DNA from: Bugula neritina
Taxonomy: Eukaryota > Animalia > Bryozoa
Assembly: GCA_964035545.1 (NCBI GenBank)
Contig: OZ037772.1
Location: forward strand, 4,964,233-5,028,232
Direction of reading: 5' to 3'
DNA length: 64,000 nucleotides
Under the pieces are notes generated by a model. It ran no database searches and had not been told where the DNA came from. It worked only from the letters and a program-made list of their open reading frames with translations. The translations under genes and the position numbers were made by a program. Every line of letters begins with the position of its first letter. Positions within the stretch are counted from its first letter, which is position 1. This document shows, in pieces, positions 21,423 to 63,399 of this stretch.

Positions 21423-21563
21423 CATGTCTAATCTGAAGAATCTAGAGACTCTTTTTATGTCGGGCAATAACTTCAGTGAAGGATTACCTGATGCAGTCAC
21501 ACTAATGACATCTCTAAGGGTGTTGCATATTAATCAGTTTAAACTGCCAACTCTACCTCAAAA
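21423..21563 (+). CDS. LRR cassette exon 1 (141 bp, phase 2-2): MSNLKNLETLFMSGNNFSEGLPDAVTLMTSLRVLHINQFKLPTLPQ
   Basis: tatag acceptor, gttagt donor, two LxxLxLxxNxL-type repeats. Confidence 0.9.
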
Positions 21564-21977
21564 GTTAGTAAACGATACTTTAAGTAAATTGGTCATAGAC
21601 CTTTTTCATCTATAGTAGACGGTGCCTATAGGATTTGCCTGTATTTTTCTATAACTAGATTTGTTAAAATTCCTCAAATTTATTGCATTGTTGCAAAATT
21701 TTATATAATATGCAAATAAATATATGCTAACAAAGACATGCTACATATATATAATTACCATGACATCTACTCATGAAAGGTAGAACCCATGCCATAATAT
21801 TTTAATTTCCTATGCTTGAAATGAGTAAAAGTTGGTAAATTCAGTTTATGAGCCTTTTTTCTGAAAGATATACAGCCTAAGCTTCATGATGTAATATATC
21901 CTACTTTACCTAGCATCACAAAAGTAGTTATTTTGTATTATATATTTTGTATTGATATATTTTACTGTCTGCTATAG

Positions 21978-22118
21978 CATGTCTAACTTGAAGAATCTGG
22001 AGACTCTTTTTATGCAAGAAAATAACTTCAGTGAAGGATTACCTGATGTAGTCACATCAATGACATCTCTAAGAGAGTTGAATATGAAGAACTGTAAACT
22101 ACCAACTCTACCTGAAAG
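21978..22118 (+). CDS. LRR cassette exon 2 (FMQE / NMKN)
   Basis: 141 bp, tatag / gtttgt, open frame. Confidence 0.9.
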
Positions 22119-22838
22119 GTTTGTAAAAACAACAACTATATAAAATACAAATGAAATGTTTCTATCTAGGATTTTGCATGTCTGCCCTTTTCTAGACTTG
22201 TCAAATACTTTGCGAAAATTTCTCAAATCTATTAAGTACAAAATCTTGCTTTAATCATCACATAAAATAAGCAAATGATTATACACTAAAAAAGACATGC
22301 TATGTATAATAATCATTATAACATATGAGGTTAATTGGAATATCTTATTTGTAAGAAACTTTACAATGTCTTGCTTTCCTATGCTTGAAACCAGTAAAAG
22401 GTAGTAAGTTGAGTTTATTAGCTTTTTCTTGAAAAATATACAGCGTACACTTTATTATAAAATATCCTGCAGACTAAAATCAGACTTTGATCTGCCAATA
22501 TAATGTATAATCGATATTTAAATAAGTCATACAGTCTTTTGTTATACGATAAGTAGCAATAAACTTTAAAGTTTTAGAAACAATTATTCTGCATTATGAA
22601 GTATGAAACGAAAATGAATTATTTTCAAAAAACTACCAGTAGTGATAGAAAATATTGTAGTAAATTTCTCAATTCACTATAATGTGTGGGTCTGCTTATG
22701 TAAAGCTATTTCACCAGGTTTACAATGATAAGAGTTTATTTGCTGCGAATTATACACAAGTAAAAGTTACTACCACTAAATTAAACGATTACATAACACA
22801 GAGTAATCAACACACTACTATTCAATAACAAGTCCCAA

Positions 22839-23593
22839 CGCAGGATAGTTAAGGGCAACCTTTTAGCTGCAACTGCCTTGCTGAGATTTGCATTTGTAAT
22901 CATATAAGAATTCAGTACCAGTAAAATAAAATCTCACCTAATTGTGCTAGAGTCAAAATTTAAAAACTATGTTGTAGATCTTTTTTTTCCCCAGTGCAAG
23001 TTTTTTGGAAATTTCAATTTTCATTTTTTTTGCAAAGTTATAGACAAAAAACTGTTCAATTTTGGCCAATTTTGCCTGAAAAGCTGACTTTTCAGTTCCA
23101 GTAAAATATCTCAGCAGCAAAAGATGATATCTGAATAAAAATTGCACTGCTAGAATCCAGAGATATTTCTCCAGTGCAAGTTTTTCTTTTCTAATAACTT
23201 TGCTAGATTGCTCATAAAGTGGTGATTTATACACTGAAAATGCCATGTTTTTTCATAAGAAACTAGCAGCGCGCAGCACTTCACGCTTTAATGAGCACGA
23301 AAGGGATGAGAAGATATTGGCGAGTACATAATAATTACAGGCTTGCTAGCTGGCAGGCTAATATGAATAGCTCGCTTTGTACTTTGTTTATGTAGCACCT
23401 GTAATAGAATGTTGATAGATAACGCAGCCCTAATGAAGGTTGCTGCTTATTGGTTGTAGGTTATTCTTAGGCTAAACAATTACAAGTAGGCAACACGCAC
23501 GCCACCCGCAGAGCAATATTATTCAAGAACCTGAACTACATTTTGAGAGAAATTTAAGATATTCTTAGTGAGGATGCCCTTAACTATCCTGTG
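22839..23593 (-). mobile_element. CAC-TIR element copy 2 (complete, 755 bp)
   Basis: CGCAGGATAGTTAAGGGCA ... TGCCCTTAACTATCCTGTG; reverse complement of copy 1; no TSD because LTR lies on one side and pol on the other. Confidence 0.85.
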
Positions 23594-26500
23594 CTGACCG
23601 AAGTTGTCCTTCCTCCCAGCTGTATACACCCGCTTTCCCAACTGTTCTTCAACGTCCGAGCGAGGGGGTCTACCATTCCTACGCTCTATATTTTGGCATT
23701 GCTTACACTCATCTGCCTGGTGGCGGCTGAGTCCATTGGCATCACCGTGCTTCTTACCAACTCGGTGTTCGATCCGATAAGAAAACTCTGCAAGGATTTC
23801 CAGCCAGCGCGCCACTTGGCTTGATGGTTCAGTCCGTCGACACAGCCATATCAGAGACGCATGATTCGTCCGTAGTCCGAACATTTGCCCATACAGATAT
23901 GGTCTGAAGTGTTTGACCGCCTTGAATACTGTCAGGAGATCTCTCCTGGTTGTACAGTAGTTCTTCTCAGGCACCGACAGCACTTTAATATAGTAAGCCA
24001 ACACCACCTCGCGACCATCTTGAACCTGAGACAGCACAGCCCCCACATTGTGGTTACTGGCATCAATATCCAAAATGTACTCCTTCGCTGGGTCAGGATA
24101 CACTGAGATGGGTGCTTCCACCAGGCGATCCTTCAGTTGGTCAAATGCCTTTTGCTCGGCCTGTGTCCACTGCCATCGCACCCCCTTTGCTGTCAACCGA
24201 TTTAACGGTTGTGCAATTCCTGCGAAGTCCGGTATGTACTGACGATAGTACCCTACCAGTCCCAGGAATGCCCGCAATTAAGGGAGGTCGACAGGAACAG
24301 CCCAGTCCCTCACGGCCTGTACCTTCTCGGGGTCGGTGGCGACCCCATCTCGACCAACAGCATGGCCCAGGTACCTAACCTCGCGTTGCAGTAACGCACA
24401 CTTAGAGGGCTTGAGCTTCAGACCAGCAGCTCGAAGTCTGTCAAACACCTCCCTTAGCCGACTGAGATGAGTGTCGAATTTGAGGGAGATGACCATGACA
24501 TCATCGAGATAGATGAGCAACGTCTTCCAGTGCAGCCCACTCAGGACCTGCTCCATGAGTCGCTGGAAGGTGGCCGGTGCGGACGTAAGTCCGAATGGCA
24601 GTACCTTCCATTTCCAGAGCCCATGCCGTGTAATAAAACGCGGCCTTGTCCTGTGCTTCAGGACTCAGGGGCACCTGCCAATACTTGCTTAACAAGTCCA
24701 ACGTACTGAAGAACTTGCTACCAGCTAAGGCATTGAGCGACTCGTCAATCCTAGGAAGAGGTTAAGCGTCCTGGATGGTCACGCTGTTCAGCCTGCGATA
24801 ATCATTGCAAAACTTCCAACTCCCATCCTTTTTCCAAACCAGGACGACTGGAGAACTCCAGGCCCCATGGCCTGGCTCAATCAGGTTCCGATTCAGAAGG
24901 TCTTGCACCTGTCGGCTCACTTCCCTTTCCTTCTCAGGACCTAACCGGCGGGTCGGCTGCCGGATAGGCACCAACCCTGCCGCCAGGGGTATTTCATGAC
25001 AGACAGCTTCAGTCAGACCCATGTCATGATCGCCGCAGCTGAACACGTCTTTGTACTCAGAAAGTAGTTGCGCCATCACCAGGCGTTCCCGCTTACTTTC
25101 ACAGCCATCACCGGCATTCCCGCACAACTCTGCTATGTGTTCAGGTACCGGCTCCCTGGCGTCCCTAGTGAGTATCCTACGGGCTTCGTCTGCCGTTTTC
25201 AGCGCGGGCACTACATCCTCTTCCTGCACGGAGTGGAACTTCCCCACTAGTGACCCAGCCGGCAATTCTACCGGCTCCTTGAAAGGATTCACGCACTGGA
25301 CCAGAAACCTGCCCCGCTCATCCAGTCTATTCAGACTGTTAGCGAGCTGGACGCCCCCAGTGCACCTTCCACCACTCCTAAGTCGGAGATTTTTCTACAG
25401 TCCATTCAGAAGCGAACTGTAGCCCGAGAGCGCCCAGGTACAGTACAACGCTGCACCACCTGCACTCCCCCCACCAAGGGTCGACCAGATCGGTCGACAC
25501 AGGCCAGCTCACGCCCGGCCATCATCACTGCCGACTTGTTGAAGTCGATGTGGCACCTGTGTCATTTCAGAAATTGTATGTCCAAGATGGCATCCTCCTT
25601 GAGTTGACTAACAATGAAGGTCTCGCTGATCACCTGATTACGAACTGTACCAGTAGACTCTATTACCCCATAGACAGGAATAAACGACCCGTCCGCCAAT
25701 GTGCCATGCTCCCCTTCATATGGTTCCAGGCTAGCCCTGTCCCTGGCACTGAGTGTGTCAAACAGACGCCGGCTCAGAATGTTTGTGGTACACCCAGTAT
25801 CCAACAGGAAGGTGACAGCTTTTCCGACAAGCTTGCCGGGGAGGAAATAGCTGCCTCCATATGGCTGGGCGCTCACTGAGCGGTTCGTCTCTTGAGGCGA
25901 CACCTCATGTGCATGGAGTTGGGAATGCACCTGCGTTTTTCGTTTGCGAGGGGGTCGTCGACGTTGCGTGGGCAAGCAGGTTACATCTCGGTCTTGCTCG
26001 CACACGGGCGACCGAGTGAATGCTCGGTGCGGCGCTCGTGTGGGCAACCGAGGGAAATCCCTGTCTTGCTCCCACTCGTCGTACACTCCCTCATCAGGCA
26101 AACCTTCAAAGCAGTTTTTGAGTACCCAAGCCGGAGGTTTTGGCGGGCCTTGCGGCCTAACTCTCCTTGGGGCTTATCACTCTGGCAAAAGGCGGCCTGT
26201 CACCTGGTGGGGTTTGGGCCTTGGCCTTTTCCTTGGAGGGGTAAATCAGGGCCCACAGTTGGCAGAATCTACCATTGACCGTTGCCATTTAACTGCCTCC
26301 CTCTACCATGGGGGCAGCTTTGTATGAAGTGCCCGCCACTACCACAGCTGTCGACAACCCTCGGGGTCTCTCGACTTTCGATTGCTGGCATAGCTGCTTG
26401 ATCTCGGCTAGCAGCTCTCGAACCAAGCTTGTGGTCAAGCTAGTTGGCTCTTCAGCTGCCGCCGTGGCGACATGTACAGCTGTCTTCGCCGGCGACGTCG

Positions 26501-27071
26501 ACACGTCGTCGTCTGCTCCGACCTGCTGTATTGTCGTACCAGGCCGGCATACACTGTCGGCTTGGAAATAGGCATTTTCAAGCTTTAGAGCTCTCTTCAT
26601 AGTCTCAGTTGTTAATAGACTGGAGGAATGCATCCAGTGCTAAGCTCTGTCGACTATCAGCAGGCAAGTCGCCATAACCGACTTGTGCCAGTCGTTCGAC
26701 TACGGTCGCATGCTCTTGCAGGTTAGTCTTAAGATTTCTCCTAAGTCCCTGGAGTTGCACGCGAGCATCGAGCTTTTAATGCCTCAAATATGTCACCGAC
26801 ATCCTGGCTTATCTCATAGGGTTTAGCAGGCCCAGTCAGACATAACCGTAGCTGGATCAGAGTAACCCGATTCGGCCATCTGCAAATGGCCGCCATATCA
26901 CTGAATTCAGTGATGAATTGCTCCACATCTTTTTTTTTCTGAGAAGATGGGAGCCCGCAAGTGGTACCTGTCTATAGGCAGCGCTGGGCCGCCTATGTTA
27001 TCCTCCTCCATCGCTACCATCGTCGGCCATCTTCTTTCTACTCCCTGGCTAGGAGCATTTGTATAAGCGTG

Positions 27072-27089
27072 ATCCCACCGCTGCCACCA
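27072..27089 (-). promoter_or_regulatory. Gypsy-2 primer binding site, tRNA-Leu type
   Basis: Plus strand ATCCCACCGCTGCCACCA matches the 3' 18 nt of tRNA-Leu + CCA as recalled; 1 nt from the LTR start at 27091. Confidence 0.88.
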
Positions 27090-27299
27090 CTGTAGTGAAT
27101 TTCTCAATTCACTATAATGTGTGGGTTTGCTTATGTAAAGCTACTTCACCAGGTTTTACAATGATATGAGTTGATTAGCTACGAATCATACAACAAGTAA
27201 AACTACTACACTAAATTAAACGATTACATAACACAGAGCAATCAACACACTACTACTCAATAACAAGTCCCAAGCTGCTCTCCTGGCTAACTACTCCAA

Positions 27300-28061
27300 C
27301 ACAGAATAGTTAAGGGCAACCTTTTAGCTGCAACTGCCTTGCTGAGGTTTGCATTGTAATCATATAAGAATTCAGTACCAGTAAAATAAAATCTCACCTA
27401 ATTGTGCTAGAGTCAAAATTTAAAAACTATGTTGTAGATCTTCTTTTTCCCCAGTGCAACTCTTTTGGAAATTTCAATTTTCATTTTTCTTGCAAAGTTA
27501 TAGACAAAAAACTGCCCAATTTTGCCAGAAAAGCTGACTTTTCAGTACCGGTAAAATATCTCAGCAGCAAAAGATGATATCTGAATAAAAATTGCACTGC
27601 TAGAATCCTGAGATATTTCTCCAGTGCAACTTTTTTTCATTTTCCAATAACTCTGCTAGATTGCCCATAAATTGGTGATTTATACACTGAAAATGCCATA
27701 TTTTTTCATAAGAAACTAGCAGCGCGCAGTGGTTCACGCTTCAATGAGCACTTAGGGATGAGAAGATATTGGCGCATACATGCTAATTATAGGCTTGCTA
27801 GCTGGCAGGCTATTATGAATAGCTCGCTTTGTACTTTGTTTATGTAGCGCCCATAATGGAATGTTGATAGATAACGCAGCCCTAATGAAGGTTGCTGCTC
27901 ATCACAAGATAGTTAAGGGCATCCTCACTAAAAATATCATAAATTTCTATCAAAATGTAGTTTAGGTTCTTGAATAATACTACTCTGCGGGTGGCATGCG
28001 TGTTGCCTACTTGCAATTGCTTAGCCTAAGATCAAACTACAGCCAATCACAGGATAGTTAA
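27300..28061 (-). mobile_element. CAC-TIR element copy 3 with inverted terminal segment (27903-28047) and extra TIR stub (28048-28061)
   Basis: Three TIR starts: CACAGAATAG 27300, CACAAGATAG 27903, CACAGGATAG 28048. Confidence 0.85.
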
Positions 28062-28806
28062 TCTAGGATTTTGCATGCCTGCCTTTTTCTAGACTTGCCG
28101 TATACTTTCTCAAAATGTCTCAAATCTATTATGGACAAAGTCTTGCTATAATTATTAGATAAAATAAGCAAATAAATATACACTAATGAAGACATGCTAT
28201 GTATAATATTCATTATAACATATGTTGTTAATTGAATATATTATTTATAAGAAATTTTACAATGTTTTGATTCCCTAATCTTGAAACCAGTAAAAGTTAG
28301 TAAGTTGAGTAGTTATTAGCTTTTTCTTGCAAAATATACAGCTTCTGCTTTATTATGTAGTATCCTGTGGACTAAAGTGAGACATTGATCTGCCAATGTA
28401 ATGTATAATTGATATTTAAATGAGTCATACAGTATTTTTTCATACTATAAGCAGCAATAAACTTTAAAGTTTTAGAAACAATTAATCTGTATTTTGAAGT
28501 AAGAAATAAAAATGGATTATCTTTAAAAACTACCAGTAACAGTAGAAAATATTGTTATATATACTAATAAAATGTAAATTTTATAACTTGTATTCAACTT
28601 AAGGTCGTGAAAAGAAGAACCCATACAGTATCTTTCACATACATATGTGAGATTTATATAATATAATAATGTCTTTTATTCAAACTTCATTTTCCATTCA
28701 ATGAGATTTATATATCAATAAAAAACTTTACAATAGAATTACATTTCCTTTACTTTAGATGATTGTATTACTATATGATGCCTCAACTGATATATGTTTA
28801 CTATAG

Positions 28807-28947
28807 CATGTCTAATCTGAAGAATCTAGAGACTCTTGATATGTCAAGGAATAAGTTCAGTGAAGGATTACCTGATGTGTTCACATCAATGACGTCTCTA
28901 AGAAAGTTGCATATGCAGAACTGTGAACTACCAACTCTACCTGAGAG
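28807..28947 (+). CDS. LRR cassette exon 3 (DMSR / HMQN)
   Basis: 141 bp, tatag / gtttgt. Confidence 0.9.
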
Positions 28948-29771
28948 GTTTGTAAAAGCAACAATTATATGAAATACAAATGAAATATTTCTATGTAAGA
29001 TTTTGCGTGCCCGCCTTTTTCTAGACTTGTCAAATATTTTGTGAAAATTTCTCAAATATTTTAGGTAGAAAATCTTCCTATAATTATTACATATAACAGG
29101 CAAATAAAAAATAAAGTCATCTTATATGTATAATGATTATTATAGCACATGTGGTTAATTAGAATTAATTGGAATATATTGTTTATAAGAAACTTTACAA
29201 TGTTTTGATTTCACATTTTTGAAACCAGTAAAAGTTAGTGAGTTGAGTTTATGAGCTTCTCCTTGAAAAATATACAGCCTACGCTTTATTATGTAATATC
29301 CTGCAGACTATAAAATGAAACTTTGATCTAGCAATATAATCTGCATATAATTCATATAACTTATAATTGATATTTAAGTAAGTCATACAGTCTTTTGTTA
29401 TACTATAAGCAGTAATAATAAACTTTAAAGCTTTAAAGACAATTATTCTGCAATTTAAAGTATGAAACAAAAATGAATTATTTTCAAAAACTACCAGTAA
29501 CTATAGAAAATTTTATTGTATATACAAATAAAACGCAAATTTTATAACTTGTATTCAACTTAAGGTCTTGAAAAGAAGAACTCATGCAGTATGGTTGACG
29601 CACATATGTGAGATTTATATCTAATAATGTCTTTTATTCCAACTTCATTTTCCATTGAATGAAATTTATGTATCAATAGCAAACTTTATGCTAAAATTAC
29701 ATTTCCTTTGCTTTAGATGTTAGTTGGTTGTATTACTATATGATGCTTCAACTGGTATATGTTTACTATAG

Positions 29772-29912
29772 CATGTCTAATCTGAAGAATCTGGAGACTT
29801 TTGATATGTCAGGGAATAACTTCAGTGAAGGATTACCTGATGTATTCACATCAATGACATCTCTTAGAGAGTTGCATATGCAGAACTGTGAACTACCAAA
29901 TCTACCTGGGAG
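29772..29912 (+). CDS. LRR cassette exon 4 (DMSG / HMQN)
   Basis: 141 bp, tatag / gttagt. Confidence 0.9.
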
Positions 29913-30685
29913 GTTAGTAAGAATGCATTAAATAAAATGTTCATTTGTGTGAAGGGTATAGTTCTGCAATAGAAGTACTTATTTTTTTATTAAAATTGTC
30001 TACAGGTTTTAAAGTTCTACAGTTTTACAAACTTTCAGCATTTCATAAGTGAAATATATTAGGTTCACAATAGAATCACAAGTATCAACTGTGTTACATA
30101 CTTCCCATTGAAAGTGAACCACCGGCTTGCCATGCAGCTGACGCACTAACCATTATACTACAAGGGTAACCCTAACACTCCATGCAACCAGTTATTCTAA
30201 ACTCTGCTGGTCCCCTTACTAGTCATTCAGTTTAGGTTTCCCGGGCCTCTCAACTCTCTTGGTGCACTACAAAAATGCTATACTAAACGTGAAAGAGCTT
30301 GCTAACAATTACACATGGGTCGTTAGGTGATCTCAACACCACACCAAGCTGTTCAAATGTGCATTCAGCTCCCTGCTACCATAAAGCTATTCACCTGCAC
30401 TAACCGTCATGATGTAAGAACTTCAATTACAGGAGGTTCTAATTTTACATGCCTCTCCTTTCAAACGGAAGGATATCACAATTACTAGACATCAAATTTT
30501 TATAAGCGCATTACAGAGATTACTTGATTAGCATGTGAATAAAATCCTAGTTGTATATATTATTTGCTTCACTTGGTCTAATACATGAGCTGCACACTTG
30601 TATGACACAGTAGATGTGCACAGCCATAATCTACTGCAATATTACTATAAATGATGTTTATATTACTATATTATGTTTACTATAG

Positions 30686-30826
30686 CATGTCTAATCTGGA
30701 GAATCTGGAGACTCTTGATATGTCAGAGAATAACTTCAGTGATGGATTACCTAATGTATTCACATCAATGACATATCTAAGAGAGTTGCATGTGAAGAAT
30801 TGTAAACTAGAAACTCTACCTGAGAG
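30686..30826 (+). CDS. LRR cassette exon 5 (DMSE / HVKN)
   Basis: 141 bp, tatag / gtttgt. Confidence 0.9.
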
Positions 30827-31470: not shown

Positions 31471-31611
31471 CATGTCTAATCTGAAGAATCTGGAGATTCT
31501 TTATATGCTAGGGAATAAGTTCAGTGAAGGATTACCTGATGTATTCACATCAATGACATCTCTAAGAAAGTTGGATATTGAGGACTGTGGACTACCAACT
31601 CTAGCTGAGAG
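31471..31611 (+). CDS. LRR cassette exon 6 (YMLG / DIED)
   Basis: 141 bp, tatag / gttagt. Confidence 0.9.
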
Positions 31612-33240: not shown

Positions 33241-33244
33241 AGGT

Positions 33245-34018: not shown

Positions 34019-34159
34019 TATGTCTAACCTGAAGAATCTGGAGACTCTTGATATGTCAAAAAATAACTTCAGTAAGGGTTTATCTGATGTATTCACATCA
34101 ATGACATCTCTAAGAGAGTTGAATATGTGGTACTGTACACTACAAACTTTACCTGCGAG
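34019..34159 (+). CDS. LRR cassette exon 7 (DMSK / NMWY)
   Basis: 141 bp, tacag acceptor, weak donor gttttt. Confidence 0.8.
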
Positions 34160-37400: not shown

Positions 37401-37966
37401 ACTTGCAGCGCGATCCAGTCGCCATGTTTATTATTAGTAACAATTCCCAGTCAAATTATACTTGACTACGTTGCACGCTACACTATGCCGCTATTTTAAC
37501 TGTTGTTAAAGGTCGCGCTATTATGCTCTAATCACGTGACCAGCTTGCCAACCATGGAATGGCTCATTAAAACACCAATCATTCCTAAACCATAGCAGAT
37601 ATCACAAAACCGATTGGACAGCTAGAAAGAGCACATGTTAATTGACTATTACACACTAAAAGCTAAAATTGACCTATTTATGAGAACTATAGATAAAACC
37701 CCTTATAACTAACAATAGCGAATAATGCCAAGAGACCAAAACTGACGGGAGCCATCACATTTTATATCTATAGACCTAAATATGTAAATAGCAATATTTA
37801 TGTAAGATTTTCTGTTTTATCAAGAAATTGAAGTTTTTTTTCTAATTTACTTTATACATAGTTAAAGAAACAATTGCTAAAGCCTGCATATCTCTTTCAC
37901 GCCACCCTTCACTCACTCACCCACACCCTCATCCACCCATCATCTCTTACCTTCTTTCTGTAAAAC

Positions 37967-38338
37967 ACCACACGCACACGCACACGCACACGCACACGCA
38001 CACGCACACACACACACACATACACACACACACCCACACTGTAAGAAACCTGCTCTCTCAGTTTAGCTGGCTTGCTAATGATAAAATACATTTTGTCAGT
38101 ATGCTTCATGAAGGTATCTCTACTTGATAAATTTACAGGTTGGAGCGGGTGGTGATTGTTTGGTAAAGGAATATATATACATATATATATACATATATAT
38201 GTATAAATATATATATAAATAAATATATACATATGATGTGATATATGATATGATATAACGTGGTATATGATATAATATGATATAATGTGATATATGGTAT
38301 GATATGATGTGTAAACTGGTATATATATATATATATAA
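37967..38338. repeat. (CA)/(CACACG)n and (TA)-rich microsatellites
   Basis: 37967-38038 CA-rich; 38170-38338 TA/TGATA-rich. Confidence 0.9.
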
Positions 38339-38340
38339 AT

Positions 38341-39771
38341 TGGTTTGAAAACATCAAGAACAAAAGCAGTAAGTCGTTTATTACTTTTGATATATGCAAT
38401 TTCTACCCATCAATAACCGAAGACCTCCTTTACAAAGCCCTTTCCTTTGCGTCACACTTTACCAACATACCAACTGAACACCAGGAAATAATTTTACACT
38501 CTAAAAAGTCCATCCTTATCTCCAATGGTGAACAATGGACAAAAAAACACGACAGTAATTTTGATGTCACTATGGGAAGCTATGACGGCGCCGAAACCTG
38601 CCAACTAATTGCAATATACTTGCTTAATCTATTAACTACTGAAATGAACATAGAATGTAATTTAGGCCTGTCTAGAGATGATGGATTCATAGTTTGTGAA
38701 GGAACACCTAGACATACAGAACAGAACAAAAAACAAATTTGCATTTTTTTTAGAAAATTTAATCTTTCAATCACAATAGAAGCCAATAAGAAAGTTGTAA
38801 ACTTCCTAGATGTAACATTTAACTTGACTAACCAATCCTATAAACCCCATACAAAACCTGGAAACACTATCCTCTATGTTCATAAACAAAGTGACCACCC
38901 ACCTGCAGTATTGAAAAACATACCAGAAAATATTAATAAAAGACTTAGCTCACTATCCTCCAATGAAGAAGAGCTTAACACCACCATACAACCGTACCAA
39001 GAAGCACTATCAAACAGCGGATATGACTATAAATTAAAATATAACCCGACACCCAAATCCAACAACAATAATAGAAATAGAAATAGAAACATTTTGTGGT
39101 ACAACCCACCTTTTAGTTCAACAGTAAAAACCAAAATAGGGAAGAAATTTCTTCAAATCATCATCAAATGCTTTCCACCATTCAACCAACTAAGTAAAAT
39201 TTTCAATAGGAAAACCATAAAAATTAGCTATTCATGCATGCCCAACATGAAAAATATTATTGATGGCTCGAACCATCACAAACTTAAAACCACACACACC
39301 CCCACTACCGCTACTAAACTAAATAACACACAATGTAACTGCAAACAACCTTCCCACTGTCCATTAAATGGTAAATGCTTATACAAAGGCGTAATATACC
39401 AAGCAACTGTAACAAGACATGACAATAATTCCAGCCATTCATACATAGGACTCTGTTCGACTACCTTCAAAACCAGATTCAATAACCACAAAGCCTCTTT
39501 TCTACATGCAGATAAAGCCAACAGCACGCAACTCAGCAGACACATCTGGAATTTAAAAAACAACAACACGAAATTCAGCTTAAAATGGAATATTTTAAAA
39601 AATTGCAAATCATACTCAAACCTAACCAACAGATGTAACTTATGCAACTATGAGAAGTATATGATTTCAAAACAACCGGAATTATCTTCCCTCAACAAAC
39701 GAAAAGAGCTTTCCACCACATGTAGACATAAACGCAAATTTTTACTTGCGCACTTAACAGACGCTAGTTAA
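38341..39771 (+). mobile_element. 5'-truncated Penelope-like element ORF: RT + GIY-YIG endonuclease
   Basis: Open frame from 38341: FDICNFYPSI, FDVTMGSYDGAE, GLSRDDG, NFLDVTF, WYNPPF, CNC..CPLNGKC, GVIYQ..YIG..FKTRFNNH. Flanked by (TA)n on both sides. Confidence 0.93.

Positions 39772-39939: not shown

Positions 39940-40012
<73 letters not shown>
39940..40012. repeat. (TA)n microsatellite
   Basis: Near-perfect TA run. Confidence 0.97.
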
Positions 40013-51106: not shown

Positions 51107-51247
51107 CATGTCTAATCTGAAGAATCTGGAGACTCTTGATATATCATGGAATAACTTCAGCGAAGGATTACCTGATGTAGTCACATCAATGACATCTCTA
51201 AGAGAAATGAATATTAGTTTCTGTGAACTACTAACTCTACCTGAAAG
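51107..51247 (+). CDS. LRR cassette exon 8 (DISW / NISF)
   Basis: 141 bp, tatag / gttagt. Confidence 0.9.
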
Positions 51248-52517: not shown

Positions 52518-52658
52518 CATGTCTAATCTGAAGAATCTGGAGACTCTCGCGGTATCACGGAATAACTTCAGTGAAGGGTTACCTGATGTAGTCACATCAA
52601 TGACATTACTAAGAGAGTTGAATATTAGTTCCTGTGAACTACAAACTCTACCTGAGTG
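52518..52658 (+). CDS. LRR cassette exon 9 (AVSR / NISS), missed by the ORF track
   Basis: 141 bp, tatag / gttagt; MSNLKNLETLAVSRNNFSEGLPDVVTSMTLLRELNISSCELQTLPE. Confidence 0.9.
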
Positions 52659-53331: not shown

Positions 53332-55060
53332 CAGTGGTTCCCAACCTTTTTCGGACGATTCCCCCCTTTCATAAATGTTGACTATTAATTTCCCCCCTTT
53401 CGAAGAGCGAAGAGATTTTATGACTTACTCAATAAGAACATATGATCCAATGCAATATAATTATTTTGTTCTATTATATTTGCATATAATATATTTATCA
53501 TAATAGTAATAGTATCGTAACTTTTATGTTATAAAATACAGTGGAGTTCAATTATTAATGTTATGGCTTCATTTGATGCTTTTGTGCCAGCTAGCTTAAG
53601 CCTGGCTCTGTGTTTGACCAGGCCCATCTTAAGTAACTCTGCAGCTTAGGGCAGTTTCTCTTCTCTTTGAATTGATAAGAATCCTACCTCACAGGGATAG
53701 GTGGTGCTGGATGGCACCAAAACTCTGCTTTGTCAGTTATGTGTGGGAATAGTTTGGTTGTTGAAACCCACAATGATTTTAGATAAACTGGTGCATGTAA
53801 AAGTGGCACAGGTAATAATGGCACAAATGGATAAGCAAGTAAAATGGCACACTAATATTAAATTTTTCTAAATTCAAACCCCAAATCCTCCACCCCAAAC
53901 TCTCCACCCCAAGCCCCCAACCTTTGAACCCCAAACCCTCACTTCCTAACTCAAACCCCCAGCCCAAACTCCAGAACCCCAAGTACAAACCAAAGTCCTC
54001 ACCTCAAACCCCTCTTTCGAACTCCAAACCCCCCAATATTGAAAACATGTACCTTTTTTACTTAATTTTCCATTTGTACCATTATTACCTGTACCATTTC
54101 TACTGGACACTACTCACAATACACCAACTAGAGAAGATTTCAAATCACCCTTCATTGCTGAATTGTGAATTAACTCAATAAAATCCTCCTGTAACTTGTC
54201 TGAAAACTGTTCAACAAAGCATTGCAATGGGTCACATGTCAATTTAAAAATCTAGCTCTTTTCTTTGGAAGGTAGCTTAGAGAAATACCGTTAAAACTCC
54301 ATTGAAAGTTTAGAGAGATGCCTAGATTAAGCTTTTTGAAAAATGATCTGGAACAAAAGGTGTTTGATAAAAATGGCACAGGTGAAAATGGCAGAGGTAA
54401 TAATGGCACAAATGGAAAATTAAGTAAAAATAGCACATTTTCAATATTTGCATTTTAGATTTGAGTTGGGGGGTTAGGCGTTCAGAATGGGGGGTTCGAA
54501 GGTTTGGGAAATTTTAACACCAGTGTGCAATTTTTACCTGTGCCATCTTTACCTAAAATCAGAACAGGTTCTTCTCCGGGAAAAGTTCATTGAGTGTGGG
54601 GAAAAACACCATGTTTTTGATAGATGCCACCACTTTGGTGTAACTTTAAACACATTGCTGCTGCTATGACTATGACAAGCAATGATATGATGATTGCTCT
54701 CCTGCATTTTTAGGTTCAGATTGCTTAGCGTAGCAAATATATTTGTTAGGTATGTAGTAAACAGTTCATAGAGATTGACTTGCATGGCTGCTAAAAGTTG
54801 GCCTGTTGGTTTTTGCATATTTTTGACCTCCATTCGAAAAAGAACAGAAAGCACTTTGGGTATAGAGTAATTGATAAATACAAATAGAATTAAACTGAAA
54901 TTGTGGAATATGGTGTGGTTAAATAGATGAGCAAAGATGAAGGTTCATAGATATACATATAGTAATATACATAACTTGCAAGAGCTCAAAAACCGTCAAA
55001 AAATTGCATGAATTTGTCAAAATCCAAATTCCCCCCTAAAATGTCCAAATTCCCCCCCTA
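53332..55060 (-). mobile_element. hAT (Charlie/Buster-like) remnant, right TIR missing
   Basis: Left end CAGTGGTTCCCAACCTTTT; minus-strand TTYPCEVGF (cf. TTYLCExGFS); subterminal AATTCCCCCC repeats at both ends. Confidence 0.7.
53789..54112. mobile_element. Palindromic MITE-like insertion (TGGCACAGGTAATAATGGCACAAATGG arms, AAACCCC-type core); related opposite-orientation copy at ~54358-54560
   Basis: Imperfect inverted arms surround short C-rich heptamer repeats. Confidence 0.6.
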
Positions 55061-55699
55061 GCAAATGTAACTTGAGATATAGGAGTACGCTACTGTGTAT
55101 ACAGGTCTAGTTCAACTTCCCCTTCTGAGCCATCCCCCCTCATATATATGAGTGCATGGAGTAGCTAGTCCTGAGTTCATTCAGGAAGCACATTACATGA
55201 TATATAAATTTAAGCATAAAACAATTCGTAAACGAGCACGAAGAACAGTAAAAACATGCATGAGCATCTGTCCAACATGTCCCCTGCCTACATACTTGTG
55301 ACCCTTAAACCCGTTGTAGATAAACTTATTTTAAACATAAATATAAGTTATAAGAAGAAAAAAATCACTTTTTAAATGTTTTTTTATATAAATATATTAC
55401 AAAACATGGAGCCTGCAAAAATTATGGAAACTTCACTGTGTAATCATTTATAAGAACTTAGAACACAGTAATTTGAAATAACTGATATTGTTGCCCCTGG
55501 CCCAAGCTGAAGTTTAAAATATGTGGATCCCACCATGAAAGGCTCTGTTTTGAAAGCCTTAGCTATGTAGCTATGAAAAGGTAGAAAACCCGTCTAATAT
55601 ATGAGCTGGATACTTGTGTGACACAGTAGATGTGCACAGCCATAATCTACTACAATTTTACTAAATGATGTTTCAATTAGTATATTATGTTTACTATAG

Positions 55700-55840
55700 C
55701 ATTTCTAATCTGAAAAATCTGGAGACTCTTGATATAACAGGGAATAACTTCAGTAAAGGATTACCTGATGTATGGACATCAATGACATCTCTAAGGACGT
55801 TGGATATGAAAAACTGTGAACTACCAACTCTACCTGAGAG
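55700..55840 (+). CDS. LRR cassette exon 10 (DITG / DMKN)
   Basis: 141 bp, tatag / gttggt. Confidence 0.9.
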
Positions 55841-56451
55841 GTTGGTAAAAGCAACTGAATATGAAATACAAATAAACTGTTTCTTTTTATTTAGGATTTT
55901 GCATGGATGTATTCTTCTAGACTTATATTTTTTTATTGCTAAATATCTTGTGAAAATCTCTCAAGTCTGTTGCAATTTTTTGCAATATTATTACATAAAT
56001 ATGCAAATAAATATATGCTAATAAAGCAATGGTATGTATATGAAATTATAACATGTGGTTAAATGGAATATATTATATGTAGCAAACGTTACAACATTTT
56101 AATTTCATATGCTTGAAATGAGTAAATTAGGTAAATTATAAGTTGACTTTATTAGCCTTTTTTTAAAAAATGAAAAGCATAGGTTTCAAAATGTAATATC
56201 CTGTAAACTAAAATCAGACCTTGATTCGGCAATATAATGTATATAATTGATATTTAAATAGGTTATACTGTCTTTTGCTATGCTATAAGCAGTAAAAAAC
56301 TTTAATGAACGTGTTATAAACAAGTAATCTGTATTTTGAAGTATAAAACAAAAACGAATTATTTCAGCAAATTACCTGTAGCTATATATGTTAGATGTTA
56401 GATGGTTGTACTATACTATTTCATATCTCAACTAGTATATGTTTACTATAG

Positions 56452-56592
56452 CATGTCTAATCTTAAGAATCTGGAGACTCTTGATACGTCAGAGAACAAC
56501 TTTATTAGAGGATTACCTGATGTATTCACATCAATTACATCTTTAAGAAATTTGAATATGCGATACTGTGCGCTACCAACTTTACCTGAGAG
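56452..56592 (+). CDS. LRR cassette exon 11 (DTSE / NMRY)
   Basis: 141 bp, tatag / gttagt. Confidence 0.9.
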
Positions 56593-57312
56593 GTTAGTAA
56601 CAGCAACAATTATATATATGAAAGAAAAATAAATCAACTGAATATGAAATACAAATGAACTGTTTCTCTAGGATTTTGCACGCTTGCATTTTCTAGACTC
56701 ATATTTTTTGTTGCTAAATATTTTCTGAAAATTTCTCAAAACTGTTAAACATCTTGCTATTATAGTTAGTATATTACATAAAATACGCAAATAAGTGTAC
56801 AATATTTAAGAGATGGCTGTGTACAATATTATAAAATGTGGTCAACTGGATTTATAGTATATATTAGAAACTTTACAATAGTATAACTTCGTATCCTTGA
56901 AATGGGTAAAAGTTAGCAAGTTGAGTTTATTGGTTTTCTTTCATAGAAAATAATAAACTCACAATTCAATATGTAATATCCTGCAGACTAAAATCAGACT
57001 TTGATCTGGCAATATGATGTATATGATTGATATTTAATTGCCAAATACTTTGTCAAAATTTCTCAAATCTATTAGGTACAAAATCTTGCTATAATTATTA
57101 CATAAGATAATAAGTTATCTAAAATACAAATAAACTGTTTCTCTAGGATTTTGAATGCCTGCATTTTTCTAGGCTATGATATTTTTTGTTGCTAAATATT
57201 TTGTGAAAATTTCTCAAAACTGTTAAAAAATATTGCTATAGTTACTATATTATATAAAATGCGCAAATAAGTGTACAATAATAAGTATGCTGTGTATATA
57301 ATATTAGAAAAT

Positions 57313-57562
57313 GTGACCCAGGCAGTCAGAAAAGCACTTTGTGACAAAATTCACATTTTCAGTTAATGCTTGATTCTTATTTGCCTCTTTATACTGATTG
57401 ATTTGCTGTTTAAATTTTTGAAATCGGACTACTATTATAATAGTGGTCCGATTTCAAAAATTTAAAGTGCAAATCAATCAGTATAAAGAGGCAAATACGA
57501 ATCAAGCATTAACTGAAAATGTGAATTTTGTCACAAAGTGCTTTTCTGACTGCCTGGGTCAC
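57313..57562. mobile_element. 250-bp near-perfect palindromic MITE (Sola1-like target)
   Basis: GTGACCCAGGCAGTCAG...CTGACTGCCTGGGTCAC, ~125-bp arms with no spacer; 4-bp TSD AAAT (AWWT); absent from the paralogous module at ~56835. Confidence 0.85.
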
Positions 57563-58455
57563 AAATGTAGTTAACTGAATTTATATAATATTTTAAAAAC
57601 TTTACAATATTTTAATTCCGTATCCTTAAAATGGGAAAAAGTTAGTAAGCTAAGTTTATGAGCTTTTTCTTGAAAAATATGCAGCCCAAGCTTTATTATG
57701 TATTATCCTGCAGACTAAAATGAGACTTTGATCTGTCATTATAAATTCTTCAACTCTATTATATTGCTGCAAAATTGTATGTAATATACAAGTAAAGATA
57801 TCATGCTATAGAACATAGCCTGCAGTAATTATGGAAGTTCCACTATATGTGATGATTCATATAAGAACTTAGAATGAAGTAATTTGAAAAACTGATTTTC
57901 TGGCCCTTAGTCCAAGCTGAAGTTTATGAAATGAGTAAATTAGGTAAATTACAAGTTGACTTTACTAGCCTTTTCTTGAAAAATAAAAAGTGGAAGTTTT
58001 AAAATGTCATATCCTGCTGACTAAAATCAGACTTTAATCTGGCAATATAATGTATAATTGATATTTAAATAACTCATACAGTCTTTTGTTATACTATAAG
58101 CAGTAACACACTTTAAAGTTTTAGAAACAATTATTCTGTATTTTGAAGTACGACATAAAAGTGAATTATTTTCAAAAATAGCAGTAACGATAGAAAATAT
58201 TATTATATATATACACTAATAAAATTTAAGTTTTATAATTTGTATTCAACTTAAGGTCTTGAAAAAAAGAACTCATGCAGTGTATTTCACACACATATGT
58301 GATATTTATATCTAATAATGTCTTTTATTCAAACTTCATTTTTTATTGGATGAAATTTACAAATCAATAAACAACTTTATGCTAGAACTCCGTTTCCTTT
58401 GCTTTAGATGGTTGTAATACTATATGTTGTCTCAACTGGTATATGTTTACTATAG

Positions 58456-58573
58456 CATGTCTAATCTGAAAAATCTGAAAACTCATTGAAGGATTACCTG
58501 ATGTAGTCACATCAATGACATCTCTAAGAGAAATGAATATTAGTTCCTGTAAACTACTAACTCTACCTGAGAG
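58456..58573 (+). pseudogene. LRR cassette exon 12, defective (118 bp)
   Basis: Net 23 nt missing over the first variable patch; reads MSNLKNLKTH*; donor gttatt lacks +5G. Confidence 0.88.
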
Positions 58574-59828
58574 GTTATTAAATATGTATTAACTAAAATG
58601 TTCATTAGTGTGAAGGATATAATTATGCATTAGATGTACCTATTTTTTATTAAAGTTATCTACATATTCTGAAGTTAGGCTTGGAAATTTCTAGAAGCAT
58701 TTTGACTCGCTTTCTACAGTTTCTAAGTGCAATATGTTGGGTTCACAGCAGAATCACAAGTATTAACTGTGTTAAACATTTTCCACTGAGAGTTGACCAC
58801 CAACTTTTCAGCTGACACTCTAACAATTACACTACAATAACTACTGGGTAATCTTAACATTTCATTCAACCAATTCTTCTGAACTCCACTGGCCCCCTTT
58901 CTACTCAATAACTATTAGGCTTTCCTGGCTTCTCAACTCGATTTGTATACAAACATACTACATGGCTGGCTATAGCAGTGTAAACAAACGCTGTACAGTT
59001 GTCCAATATAACATATCATATATAATATAACATGCTTATTTGAACATGTTTGATGTAAATTTTTAGCAAACTATTAGATGAACAATAATAAGTTTTTTTT
59101 ATTTTCTTTATTTAAGGAAAGTTGTCAAATTGTAATAACAATTCTTGATACAGTTATAAAATCTGTGACGGTCTCCTCCCACCAAAAAAATAACAAATAC
59201 AATCATTATAATAGCAAATGTAACTTGAGATAGGAGTACGCTAGTGTGTATACAGGTCTAGTTCAACTCACCCTTCTGAGCCATCCCCCTTATATATATG
59301 AGTAGAATAGCTAGTCCTGAGTTTATTCAGGAAGCACATTACACTGAATATGGATTATAACATAACATAATTTATAAACGGGCACGAAGAACAGTAAAAA
59401 CATACACAAGCGTCTGTCCAGCAGGTCCCCTGCCTACATACTTGTGTCCCTCAAACACGTTACAGATAAACTTATTTTTAAACATAAATATAAGTTATAA
59501 GAGGAGAAAAATCTTCTCTTAAATGATTTTTTTACATAAATATATTACAAAACATGGAGCCTGCAATATTTATGGAAACTATACACACTGTGTAATAATT
59601 CTTAAGAACTTAGAATAAAGTAATTTGAAATAACTGATAATGTGGCCCATAGCCAATAAGCTGAAGTTCAAAATATGTGGCCCCCGCTATGAAATGCTCT
59701 GTTTTGAAAGCTCTCAGTATTAAAAGGTTGAAAACCTTTGGTCTAATACATGCAGTAGATTTTACCAGCCATAAGCTACTACAATATTACTAAATGATGT
59801 TTCAATTAGTATATTATGTTTACTATAG

Positions 59829-59969
59829 CATGTCTAATCTGGAGAATCTGGAGACTCTTAATATAGCAAGAAATAACTTCAGTGAAGGATTGCCTGATGT
59901 ATTCACATCAATGACATCTCTAAGAAAGTTGCATATGCGGTACTGTAAACTACCAACTCTACCTGAGAG
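59829..59969 (+). CDS. LRR cassette exon 13 (NIAR / HMRY)
   Basis: 141 bp, tatag / gttagt. Confidence 0.9.
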
Positions 59970-60445
59970 GTTAGTAAAAAAAGAAACTTTGTATAAAAGG
60001 CTCATATATAATTTTCATCTATAGCATATGACTCTTATAAGATTCGACTGCATGTATTTTATAACTGCCACTTCTGTTGCTAGATGTTTTGCAATAAAAT
60101 CCTAAACCTATTGAATTGTTTTAAAATTAGATACAGTTTGCAAATAAGTTTATGCTAACAAAGATATACATACATATAAATATCATGAGATGTTATAGTC
60201 ATGGAAAGCATAAGACATGTTACAATATTTTAATTTCTCCCGTTTGAAGTGAGCAAAAGTTAGAGAGTTAAGTTCATTATAAAGTTTTTACTTGGGAAAT
60301 AAACAGTTCAAGCTTCATTGTGTAATATCTTGCAGACTAAAATCAATTGAGTTGAGTTAGCAACATATAATACTAAATAAGTTTTTTGTTATATATATAT
60401 TTTGTATTATATAAGTTGTATTATATAATCTATTGTCTGCTATAG

Positions 60446-60586
60446 CATGTCTAACCTGAAGAATCTGGAGACTCTTGATTTGTCACATAATAACTTCAGT
60501 GTAAGACTACCTGCTGTAGTCACATCAATGACATTACTAAGAGAGTTGAATATTAGTTTCTGTAAACTACCAACTCTACCTGAGAG
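60446..60586 (+). CDS. LRR cassette exon 14 (DLSH / NISF), missed by the ORF track
   Basis: 141 bp, tatag / gttagt; MSNLKNLETLDLSHNNFSVRLPAVVTSMTLLRELNISFCKLPTLPE. Confidence 0.9.
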
Positions 60587-62352
60587 GTTAGTAAAAATCT
60601 ATCAACTAAAATGTTCATTAGTGTGAAGGATCCAATTCTGCATTAAATGCACCTATTTTTTTATTAAAGTTATCTACATACTCTGAAGGTAAGCTTGGAA
60701 CGTTCTAGAAGCATTTTGACTAGCTTTGTAGAGTTTCTAAGTGCAATATGTTGGGTTCACAGCAGAATCACAAGTACCAACTGTGTTAAACATCTTCCAC
60801 TGAGAGTTAACCACCAACTTTTCAGCTGACACTCTAACAATTACACTACAATAACTACTGGGTAATCTTAACATCTCATTCAACCAGCTCTTTTAAACTT
60901 CACTGGCCCCCTTTCTACTCAATAACTATTAGGGTTCCCTGGCTTCTCATCTCGCTTTGCATACAAACATGCTGCATGGCTGGCTATAGCAGTGTGAACA
61001 AACGCTGTACAGTTGTCCAATATAACATCTCATATTTAATTTAACATGCTTACTTGAACATGTTTGATGTAAATTTTTAGTAAACTGTCACATGAACAAT
61101 AATAAATTTTCATTTTCTTTATTTAAGGGAAAATGTCAAATTGTTATAACAATTCTTGATACAGTTATAAAATCTGTGATCGTCCCCTCTCACCAGAATA
61201 ATAGCTAATACAATGATTATAATAGCAAATATAACTTGAGATAAGAGTACGCTACTGTGTATACAGGTCTAGTTCAACTCACCCTTCTGAGCCATCCCCC
61301 TTATATATTTGTGTGGAGTAGCTAGTCCTGAGTTCATCCAGGAAGCGCATTACATGATATATAGATTTAAGCATAAAATAATTCGTAAACGAGCACGAAG
61401 AACAGTAAAAACATGCATGAGGGTCTGTCCAACATGTCCCCTGCCTACATACTTGTGACCCTCCAACGCATTACAGATAAACTTATTTTTAAACATAAAT
61501 TTGAGTTATGAAGAGAGAAAAATCACCTTTTAGATGTTTTTTTATATAAATATAATATTACAAAACATGGAGCCTGCAATAATTATTGAAACTCCACTGT
61601 GTAATGATTCTTAAGAACTTAGAATAAAGTAATTTGAAATAACTGATAATGTGGTCCCTAGCCCAAGGTGAAGTTTAAAATATGTGGCCCTCACCATGGA
61701 ATGCTCTGTTTCAAAAGCCTTAGCTATGAAAAGGTAGGAAACCCTTGGTCTAATACATGAGCTGCCTACTTGTATGACACAGCAGATGTGCACAGCCATA
61801 ATCTACTACAATATTACTAAAGGAGTAAAAACTTATTTATGATTTGACTTTTTTAGCTGTTTCTTGAAAAATAAGAAGCTCAAGCTTCAATATGTCATAT
61901 ACTGCAGACTAAAATCAGACTCTGATCCGGCAATATATAAATTATAATATATGATTCATATTTAATTAAGTCATACAGTATTTTGTTATATTATAAGCTG
62001 TGATAAACTTTACAAATTTAGAAACAACTATAAATCTGCATTTTGAAGTATAAAACAAAAATGGATTATTTTCAAAAACTACCAAAAATGATAGAAAATA
62101 TTGTCGCATATACTAATAAAATATAAATTATATAACTGGTATTCAGCTTAAAGTCTTGAAAAGAAGAACTTATGCAGTATATTTCACACACATATGTGAG
62201 ATTTATATCTAATAATGTCTTTTATTCCAACTTCATTTTTCATTAAATAAAATTTATATATCAATAAAAAACTTTACGCTAGAATTACATTGCTGTAGCT
62301 TAAGATGGTTGTATTACTATATGATGTCTCAACTGGTATATGTTTACTATAG

Positions 62353-62493
62353 CATGTCTAATCTGAAGAATCTGGAGACTCTTGATATGTCACATAATAA
62401 CTTCAGTGAAGGATTACCTGATGTATTCACATCAATGACATCTCTAAGAGAGTTGAATATTAGTTCCTGTGAACTACCAAATCTACCTGGGAG
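62353..62493 (+). CDS. LRR cassette exon 15 (DMSH / NISS)
   Basis: 141 bp, tatag / gttagt. Confidence 0.9.
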
Positions 62494-63258
62494 GTTAGTA
62501 AGAATGTATTAAATAAAATGTTCATTAGTGTGAAGGATATAATTCTTCAATAGAAGTACTTTTTTTTTTATTAAAATTATCTACAGGTTTTAAAGTTCTA
62601 TAGTTTTACAAATTTTCTGCGTTTCAAAAGTGCAATATATTAGGTATTATAGAATCACAAGTACCAACTGTGTTACATACTTCCCATTGAAAGTCAACCA
62701 CCGGCTTGCCAGCTGACGCACTAACTATTACACTACAAGGGTAATCCTAAAACTCCATGCAACCAGTTATTCTAAACTCTGCTGGTTCCCTTACTACTCA
62801 TTCAGTTTAGGCTTCCCGGGCCTCTCAACTCTCTTGGCGTACTACCAAAATGCTATACTAAATGTGAAAGAGTTTGCTAACAATTACACATGGGTCGTTA
62901 GGTAATCTCAACACCACACCAAGCTGTTCACATGTGCATTCAGCTCCCTGCTACCATAAAGCTATTCACGTGCACTAACCGTCATGATGTAAGAACTTCA
63001 ATTACAGAAGGTTCTAATTTTACATGCCCCTCCTTTCAAATGGAAGGATATCACAATTACTAGACATCAAATTTTTATAAGCGCATTACAGAGATTACTT
63101 GATTAGCATGTGAATAAAATCTTAGTTGTATATATTATATGCTTCACTTGGTCTAATACATGAGCTGCCTACTTGTATGACACAGCAGATGTGCACACCC
63201 AAAATCTACTACAATATTACTAAATGATGTTTCAATTACTATATTATGTTTACTATAG

Positions 63259-63399
63259 CATGTCTAATCTGGAGAATCTGGAGACTCTTGATATGTCAGG
63301 GAATAAGTTCAGTGAAGGATTACCTAATGTATTCACATCAATGACATCTCTAAGAACGTTGAATATGCAGATCTGTGAACTACCAACTCTACCTGAGAG
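63259..63399 (+). CDS. LRR cassette exon 16 (DMSG / NMQI)
   Basis: 141 bp, tatag / gttagt; the downstream module runs off the window, so the array probably continues. Confidence 0.9.

Follow-up and report, generated by a model that had tools for sequence, protein, structure and literature searches.

Hypervariable concave-face residues in the tandem double leucine-rich-repeat exons of a Roc-COR-caspase gene of the bryozoan Bugula neritina

Do the tandem leucine-rich-repeat (LRR) exons of a bryozoan gene differ from one another because selection has kept their ligand-binding face diverse, and to what kind of gene do they belong? These questions are raised by a stretch of 64,000 nucleotides of the Bugula neritina genome (the window, on contig C8 of the 216-Mb assembly), which carries many copies of a short exon, here called a cassette, encoding a pair of LRRs. 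An earlier note, made from the letters alone, had proposed that variation among the copies was concentrated on the LRRs' concave face and reflected diversifying selection by pathogens or allorecognition. Our results confirmed this concentration and supported selection for diversity on that face, with pathogens or allorecognition as no more than candidate agents, and the explanation that best accounted for them as a whole, which we regard as probable, was that the cassettes are interchangeable exons of one LRR-Roc-COR-caspase gene with a concave surface kept diverse by selection. Focused hypervariability on an LRR binding face is a classic mark of receptors whose ligands keep changing.

Each intact cassette was 141 nt long and read C, 46 codons and AG. 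Both flanking introns are accordingly in phase 2, and the split codon AG/C adds a Ser as the 47th residue. Any number of cassettes can be joined in frame, at 47 residues per unit. The copies were preceded by a pyrimidine-rich tract ending in ctatAG and followed by GTTAGT or GTTTGT. Numbered from the cassette Met, which is internal to the exon, the product was a pair of LRRs of 24 and 23 residues, L7xxL10xM12xxN15xF17xxxL21P and then L31xxL34xM36xxC39xL41xxL44P. The residues that define an LRR solenoid (L7, L10, N15, F17, L21, L31, L34, C39, L41 and L44) were conserved, and the cassette aligned in register with solved plant and animal LRRs.

Cassettes were detected by scanning all six frames for the motif and with an nhmmer profile, and the residue lists of the earlier note proved right for the 15 intact exons of the window: position 11 was F/D/Y/A/N, 14 was G/E/R/K/W/H, 33 was V/E/K/T/N, 37 was N/K/Q/E/W/S/R, 38 was Q/N/D/Y/F/S/I and 40 was K/E/G/T/A, with S2, N3, L4, N6, L7, E8, N15, F17, L21, T26, T29, L31, R32, L41 and L44 invariant. 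Among 68 intact cassettes from six arrays, entropy was highest at positions 37 and 38 (3.0 bits each), followed by 14 (2.75), 40 (2.25) and 33, 11 and 35 (2.2 each). All seven belonged to the 12 codons (8, 9, 11, 13, 14, 16, 32, 33, 35, 37, 38 and 40) that had been fixed a priori from the motif LxxLxLxxN/CxL as the candidate ligand face; position 35 (N/D/H/Y) had been absent from the earlier list. Positions 25, 42, 19, 13, 12 and 36 were moderately variable. L7, N15, L31 and L41 were unchanged in all 68 cassettes, and across cassettes the framework (L, N, C, F, LP) stayed constant. The proposal that the variable sites are the x positions of this motif held for the top sites, but not for E8, T9 and R32, which were conserved. 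Variation was limited to the loop after each strand and to the strand's own C-terminal half, with about 7-9 residues varying freely (11, 13, 14 and 16 in the first LRR; 33, 35, 37, 38 and 40 in the second). The concentration at ligand-face codons was borne out by permutation: a random set of 12 codons equalled their nonsynonymous diversity in 1 of 20,000 trials for the ROCO-caspase gene described below and in 0 of 20,000 for its family (p <= 5e-5).

The structural placement of these positions was taken from the secondary structure of a homologue, a 283-aa repeat array from another cheilostome bryozoan, Watersipora subatra. A single-sequence AlphaFold model of its six 47-aa units (pLDDT 89, pTM 0.87) had its strands at cassette positions 9-13 and 33-37, and residues 23-27 and 46-3 were helical, so that the variable sites mapped to the concave beta-strands and the loop after them, as had been expected. 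From general LRR geometry, residues 11, 13, 33, 35 and 37 would point outward from the strands of the concave sheet, with 14, 16, 38 and 40 in the loop that comes next. A fold of a single 46-aa cassette from the 19-exon alignment (pLDDT 52, a helix) was discarded, as it is meaningless for an isolated LRR pair.

If the ligand face were under diversifying selection, its codons should have changed faster than silent sites and than the introns beside them, and both comparisons pointed this way. With the Nei-Gojobori method, dN (nonsynonymous divergence) was 0.39-0.41 for the concave set and 0.08 for the framework, and exon-wide dS (synonymous divergence) was 0.14-0.18. The ratio of concave dN to exon-wide dS was 2.13 for the gene (codon bootstrap 1.33-3.17) and 2.83 for the family (1.71-4.33), above the value of 1 that the earlier claim required. 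Neutral divergence was gauged in 20 phylogenetically independent between-gene cassette pairs, chosen solely by homology of both flanking introns. Here differences amounted to 26.5% at positions 1+2 of concave codons and 10.2% in the introns (odds ratio 3.2, p=2e-22), with 7.1% at positions 1+2 of framework codons and 9.8% at third positions. Concave codons varied 2.2-2.6 times as much as the homologous flanking introns, and third positions matched the introns, indicating that the exons share the history of their flanks and that the concave excess did not come merely from wholesale exon swapping. Between-gene pairs with a third-position control were used because a within-gene comparison of exon and intron is confounded by such swapping; five independent within-gene pairs gave 25.8% at concave codons vs 12.0% in introns (p=5.5e-5). 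In short, the divergence of concave codons was about 2-3 times that of synonymous sites and homologous introns, and framework codons diverged more slowly. Many of the changes at variable codons were radical replacements of two to three nucleotides, W, Y, F and H among them.

Codon site models were fitted with our own Goldman-Yang implementation, in which topology and relative branch lengths were kept fixed and site posteriors came from naive empirical Bayes. They favoured a class of sites with omega of about 3-5: in the 19 unique cassettes of the gene, twice the log-likelihood difference was 27.7 for M2a over M1a (omega 4.9), 30.2 for M8 over M7 and 22.4 for M8 over M8a, and in the 67 unique cassettes of the family it was 148.9 for M2a over M1a (omega 4.5 on 15% of sites), but these tree-based ratios and omegas are unreliable (inflated) in size because 43% of informative site pairs within the 141-nt exon failed the four-gamete test. 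Sites with posterior P>0.99 in the family cassettes were 11, 14, 25, 33, 37, 38 and 40, that is, the six sites listed earlier plus 25. The tree-free tests hold despite the mosaic cassettes. On the strength of dN/dS, the intron control, the site models and the structure mapping, the earlier suggestion of diversifying selection was upheld, and neither of the two outcomes that the earlier note had named as refuting it was obtained. The safest wording, which the data supported, is that selection enhances diversity on the concave surface while the background is homogenising.

The homogenising background was seen in the cassettes themselves, which had undergone duplication and exchange at two scales: entire exons that now sit in different intron contexts, and patches inside exons. 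For example, the exon at 62353 had the frame of the exon at 29772 with the NISS patch of the exon at 52518. An exon core DMSGK / TNMQIE occurred three times, identical or near-identical (63259-63399, L001:1085-1225 and L001:5464-5604), in two unrelated intron contexts, and the 3' end of the array was built of recent duplications of about 1.8 kb with two exons each. Furthermore, silent exon divergence was 0.105 within and 0.111 between intron lineages, the introns of which were unalignable beyond about 50 nt; this equality across lineages indicates that the exons were homogenised or constrained. The mosaic pattern suggests that duplication, unequal crossing-over and short-tract conversion shuffle cassettes and patches, and part of the "substitution" at variable codons is consequently an exchange of older variants.

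The cassettes were read as exons of one gene of about 70 kb, in the order N-terminal exon, cassettes, Roc-COR and caspase. The N-terminal coding exon lay at 8414..8648 (+), ended GA/gtaagt in phase 2 and began without a hydrophobic, signal-like segment; it was identified by reading the sequence, by an RNA contig 30-mer and by a homologous exon upstream of paralogous arrays. In window coordinates, the array of 22 cassettes (20 intact and 2 frame-broken) began at 21.4 kb and reached about 69.6 kb. Sixteen of them, 15 intact and one degenerate, were in the window, all on the + strand between 21423 and 63399, and six further copies, one with an additional base in an A run, lay beyond its end. The array opened with intact cassettes at 21423..21563 and 21978..22118 (cassettes 1 and 2), the former with its start at 21423/21424 and an ending in AA that gives the junction codon AAC. 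Cassettes 3 to 6 followed at 28807..28947, 29772..29912, 30686..30826 and 31471..31611, and cassette 7 (34019..34159) had T as first base and the acceptor ctacAG. After an intron of 17 kb came cassettes 8 (51107..51247), 9 (52518..52658, ending TG), 10 (55700..55840, with Ile at position 1) and 11 (56452..56592). A broken cassette at 58456..58573 retained its splice-site dinucleotides and had a 23-nt deletion by which the first LRR strand was lost and the frame shifted. The last four in the window, all intact, were cassettes 12 (59829..59969), 13 (60446..60586), 14 (62353..62493, the mosaic one) and 15 (63259..63399, identical to a copy 1.8 kb downstream, outside the window). The second frame-broken copy, at L001:2005-2146 (window coordinate 66005), carried one extra A in an A run, which may be a homopolymer assembly error.

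Downstream of the array, at about 74.7-76.9 kb in window coordinates, a large exon with a 716-aa open frame began after ttacag and opened with more LRRs (Pfam LRR_8/LRR_4). It encoded a Roc GTPase (Pfam 30.8 bits vs a cutoff of 27, L002:745-2892) with intact G motifs in the translation, namely the P-loop GNTMAGKTS, DMGGQ (DxxGQ) and THKD. The tentative assignment of a COR domain to the same exon was based on relatives that bear PF16095 COR-A (P0029, P0032-P0034), with which the open reading frame (ORF) aligned over 84-91% of its length; its nearest clusters in a protein language model were COR-containing MFHAS1-like proteins and bacterial Roco proteins. About 1 kb past this exon were caspase exons (Pfam Peptidase_C14, 4e-10) with both the catalytic His (SHG) and Cys (QACSIGE) of a p20 region present (L002:4005-4376). 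Pfam found no NACHT or NB-ARC domain, and the only signatures were of Roc, MMR_HSR1 and Arf-type GTPases. The LRRs are N-terminal of Roc, as the array lay upstream on the same strand and, in RNA, a cassette end was joined in frame to the start of a paralogue's Roc exon. The reading as one gene of about 70 kb was adopted because a tblastn search of the window, the 17-kb gap included, turned up neither another N-terminal exon nor a Roc exon.

The window was AT-rich (about 30% GC) with islands of 55% GC, and an Rfam search of it gave no match. The introns of the gene had been inflated by retroelements. Remnants of two Ty3/gypsy-type long terminal repeat (LTR) elements, with protease, reverse transcriptase (RT), RNase H and integrase-like SH3 regions, occupied islands of about 55% GC at 13690-18067 (-) and 23519-26101 (-); their ORFs were interrupted, and both sat in introns on the strand opposite to the gene. 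A 399-aa ORF at 38572-39771 (+), within the 17-kb intron between cassettes 7 and 8, had no Pfam match, and its language-model neighbours (HTH_animal, GIY-YIG and RT clusters) were those of Penelope-like retroelements. AC-rich mini- and microsatellites and an (AT)36 tract were found at 7270-7505, 8010-8115, 37965-38039 and 39940-40012, with AC-rich repeats immediately upstream of the first coding exons of the gene.

Transcripts of the family were detected, with splice joints between cassettes, between the N-terminal exon and a cassette, and between a cassette and the Roc exon. The RNA contigs were unitigs of 31-60 nt common to paralogues, so they speak at the level of the family and not of a single gene or cassette. 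Two RNA runs were laid against 58001-64000, X3 and X5, one of them filed as RNA-Seq from a "symbiont metagenome". Both covered just the five bins that contain exons, in the stretch of cassettes 12 to 15, and the introns had zero coverage. The loose ends of RNA contigs gave the cassette-to-cassette junction as predicted (...CTACCTGAG-AG/CATGTC..., and ...CTCTACCTGAG then AG/CATGTCT...). Further contigs ran directly into a cassette start from a 30-mer that matched the N-terminal exon (8619-8648) with one mismatch. Since RNA joined one cassette to another, at least two are included together and the cassettes are not mutually exclusive; a mutually exclusive array of the Dscam type was rejected on this ground.

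Several observations weigh against the reading of a single functional receptor gene under diversifying selection. Apart from the mosaicism that inflates the site-model results and the family-level nature of the RNA evidence, all divergence comparisons were made between paralogous exons, not alleles or orthologues, and may thus reflect ancient as well as ongoing diversification. Among recent changes (singletons), concave codons showed a mild and underpowered nonsynonymous excess (nonsynonymous to synonymous 18:3, against an expected ratio of 3.1), and the remaining codons were near-neutral (41:13). On the Roc ORF, Pfam COR-A and COR-B gave no match at E<=0.01. The two frame-broken cassettes might be skipped, or one might be an assembly error, or this copy of the gene might be decaying.

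Could the pattern have arisen with no positive selection at all? Unconstrained surface positions might drift, while conversion or a splicing constraint keeps the rest of the exon, silent sites included, similar, so that dN/dS would falsely exceed 1. The pervasive mosaicism, the equal silent divergence within and between lineages of unalignable introns and a singleton ratio that was not significantly raised would all fit this. However, in the intron-homologous pairs silent sites were not depressed (third positions 0.098 vs introns 0.102), and concave codons had changed 2.6 times more; conversion would homogenise variable codons too unless opposed by selection, and the many radical replacements by two to three nucleotides also speak against drift. 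We consider this account quite improbable. A further alternative is ancient functional differentiation, by which each cassette touches a different part of one conserved endogenous partner and the differences are old and under purifying selection. It would explain why identical variable patches were kept between paralogous genes or positions (w64181 and c8a_66558 with one difference, and the DMSGK/TNMQIE core found three times), and the ROCO proteins LRRK2 and MFHAS1 have housekeeping signalling roles (PMC4104024). Yet it is very improbable, given that intron-homologous cassettes of paralogous genes differed at more than a quarter of concave first and second positions against a neutral level of 10%, and that a cassette number of 6-22 among close paralogues and a family of dozens or hundreds form the pattern of a receptor repertoire rather than of a single conserved interaction.

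Combinatorial alternative splicing as the main purpose of the array, with any subset of cassettes read in frame to give a somatic repertoire of isoforms from one gene, was judged unlikely, and it would add to germline diversifying selection rather than replace it. The symmetric phase-2 form and constant 141 nt of the cassettes suit it, two frame-broken cassettes amid intact ones would need skipping, and alternative usage of LRR exons has been reported in the ROCO genes of brown algae (PMC11378527). Against this, RNA showed cassette joined to cassette, which is not mutually exclusive use, in contigs too short to reveal skipping, and the predicted Watersipora relative has six consecutive 47-aa units. 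That the array is a decaying pseudogene and its variation degeneration is hardly credible: two cassettes were frameshifted, three retroelements had inserted into introns and framework dN/dS was fairly high (0.5-0.75), but 20 of the 22 cassettes had an open frame and had lost neither splice site nor any framework residue, the Roc-COR exon was open over 716 aa with intact G motifs, the caspase had kept its His and Cys, and variation fell at 7-9 structurally coherent positions instead of being spread randomly. The interchangeable exons of one LRR-Roc-COR-caspase gene, with selection for diversity on their concave surface, therefore remained our preferred explanation.

The gene belongs to a family that is very large for a genome of 216 Mb. 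At least 62 scored matches to the Roc-COR exon fell below 1e-180 among 529 first-look candidates in the genome, on C1 (32-35.5 Mb), C6 (2.6-15.6 Mb), C5, C3, C2, C4 and C8, many of them in dense clusters on C1 and C6. In four of five paralogous loci examined, the order was again N-terminal exon, 6-13 cassettes, Roc-COR and caspase, and between close paralogues the number of cassettes ranged from 6 to 22. The sole named relatives were a B. neritina hypothetical protein (Roc, COR-A, Peptidase_C14) and the "lrrA-like" protein of W. subatra. The latter, an LRR-Roc protein (P0045), has a 47-aa double-LRR period in six consecutive units at residues 69-350, and its array varies at the equivalent positions 13, 14, 33 and 40. 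A HMMER scan with one cassette against 1.84 billion representatives returned generic LRR proteins at <=47% identity and no closer family save the Watersipora protein. A contig of 4594 nt in a public metagenome (L024, JGI 3300002729) was host-derived and carried an 85%-identical Roc-COR exon and then caspase exons, so the family is present in an independent sample. No literature on an expansion of animal ROCO-caspase genes was found, which is weak evidence as the searchable literature is incomplete.

How such a gene might work can be proposed as follows. Exon duplication, unequal crossing-over and short-tract conversion would supply variants, and selection would keep the concave surface diverse and the rest of each exon homogeneous. 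About 40 LRRs would form a long solenoid, its concave surface changing between repeats as well as between genes, and this solenoid may sense the ligand in a cytosolic protein that unites sensor (LRR), switch (Roc-COR) and executioner (caspase) in a single chain. In other ROCO proteins, Roc-COR mediates nucleotide-dependent dimerisation. Binding of a ligand could operate the Roc-COR switch and so activate the fused caspase domains by bringing them into proximity; the logic would be that of an NLR inflammasome in one chain, making the protein a functional analogue of NLRs. An intracellular sensor is favoured because there is no signal peptide: the protein appears to be cytosolic, and direct allorecognition at the cell surface is thus less likely. 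By analogy with NLRs of fungi, it might conceivably serve cytoplasmic recognition of non-self after fusion in this colonial animal.

It is possible, and can be offered only tentatively, that bryozoans, represented here by a cheilostome, have a further class of intracellular receptor for immunity or non-self, the third in animals after TLRs and NLRs. At least 62 and perhaps several hundred LRR-Roc-COR-caspase proteins, each a single chain, would make up this class. Interchangeable double-LRR exons would encode their sensor arms; in the germline these exons would gain diversity through duplication, short-tract conversion and positive selection, and combinatorial splicing might add to it in the soma. 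The class would be convergent with the strategy of brown-alga LRR-ROCO genes and plant NLRs and wired to a death protease. If this is true, ROCO proteins, the physiological inputs of which are largely unknown even for LRRK2 and MFHAS1, would gain a concrete role as sensors in an animal, and the Bryozoa, a colonial phylum with essentially unknown immune and allorecognition genes, would gain a candidate repertoire for innate immunity or non-self recognition. The system is testable, with short modular exons, defined variable positions and a built-in caspase read-out.

The closest precedent is found in the LRR-ROCO genes of the brown algae Ectocarpus and Saccharina, which are candidate immune receptors with tandem, equal-length, frame-symmetric LRR exons and exon shuffling (Zambounis et al., 2012, PMC3341825; Teng et al., 2024, PMC11378527). 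Concave-face sites of these genes were positively selected under M2/M8 (PMC3341825, PMC11378527), and the exon boundary is in phase 2 (PMC11378527). The Bugula gene was similar in its order of LRRs, Roc and putative COR, symmetric tandem LRR exons, duplication and shuffling of exons and omega >1 on the concave face. However, the stramenopile genes have one LRR of about 72 nt per exon, whereas the Bugula exon holds two in 141 nt, belongs to an animal, leads to a caspase output and is part of a family that is apparently much larger. The two are likely of independent origin. The principle itself is known from plant R genes and VLRs; the Bugula family departs from its closest match in the animal lineage, the double-LRR exon, the fused caspase and the much larger family.

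Plant NLRs and receptor-like proteins resemble the Bugula family in showing variation and omega >1 at the x residues of the beta-strand and in shifting repeat number by unequal crossing-over and gene conversion in clustered families, and the first LRR of each cassette was in register with the 24-residue plant LRRs of solved structures. The switch is different: plant NLRs use NB-ARC, a STAND ATPase, while the Bugula protein has a Ras-like Roc GTPase with COR and a fused caspase, and one exon for each LRR pair. The earlier comparison with the variable lymphocyte receptors (VLRs) was apt for the position of variation, as both have concave-surface diversity that includes aromatics and many similar LRR modules, but not for assembly. 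VLR modules are unspliced donor cassettes copied somatically into an incomplete gene, and the Bugula cassettes are ordinary spliced exons in one orientation; somatic assembly of the VLR type was rejected, since every cassette had an AG acceptor and a GT donor and direct exon-exon junctions were present in RNA. Among animal ROCO proteins, MFHAS1/MASL1, LRRK1/2 and DAPK1 likewise have LRRs before the Roc-COR core, but vertebrate ROCO genes are single-copy and without a caspase or a hypervariable cassette array, whereas the Bugula family is expanded and has a C-terminal caspase. Finally, the proposed path from LRR sensor through nucleotide-dependent switch to caspase, together with lineage-specific expansion, is like that of animal NLR, inflammasome and apoptosome sensors; unlike animal NLRs, the Bugula protein has no NACHT/NB-ARC, and its caspase is in the same polypeptide instead of being recruited via CARD or PYD adaptors.

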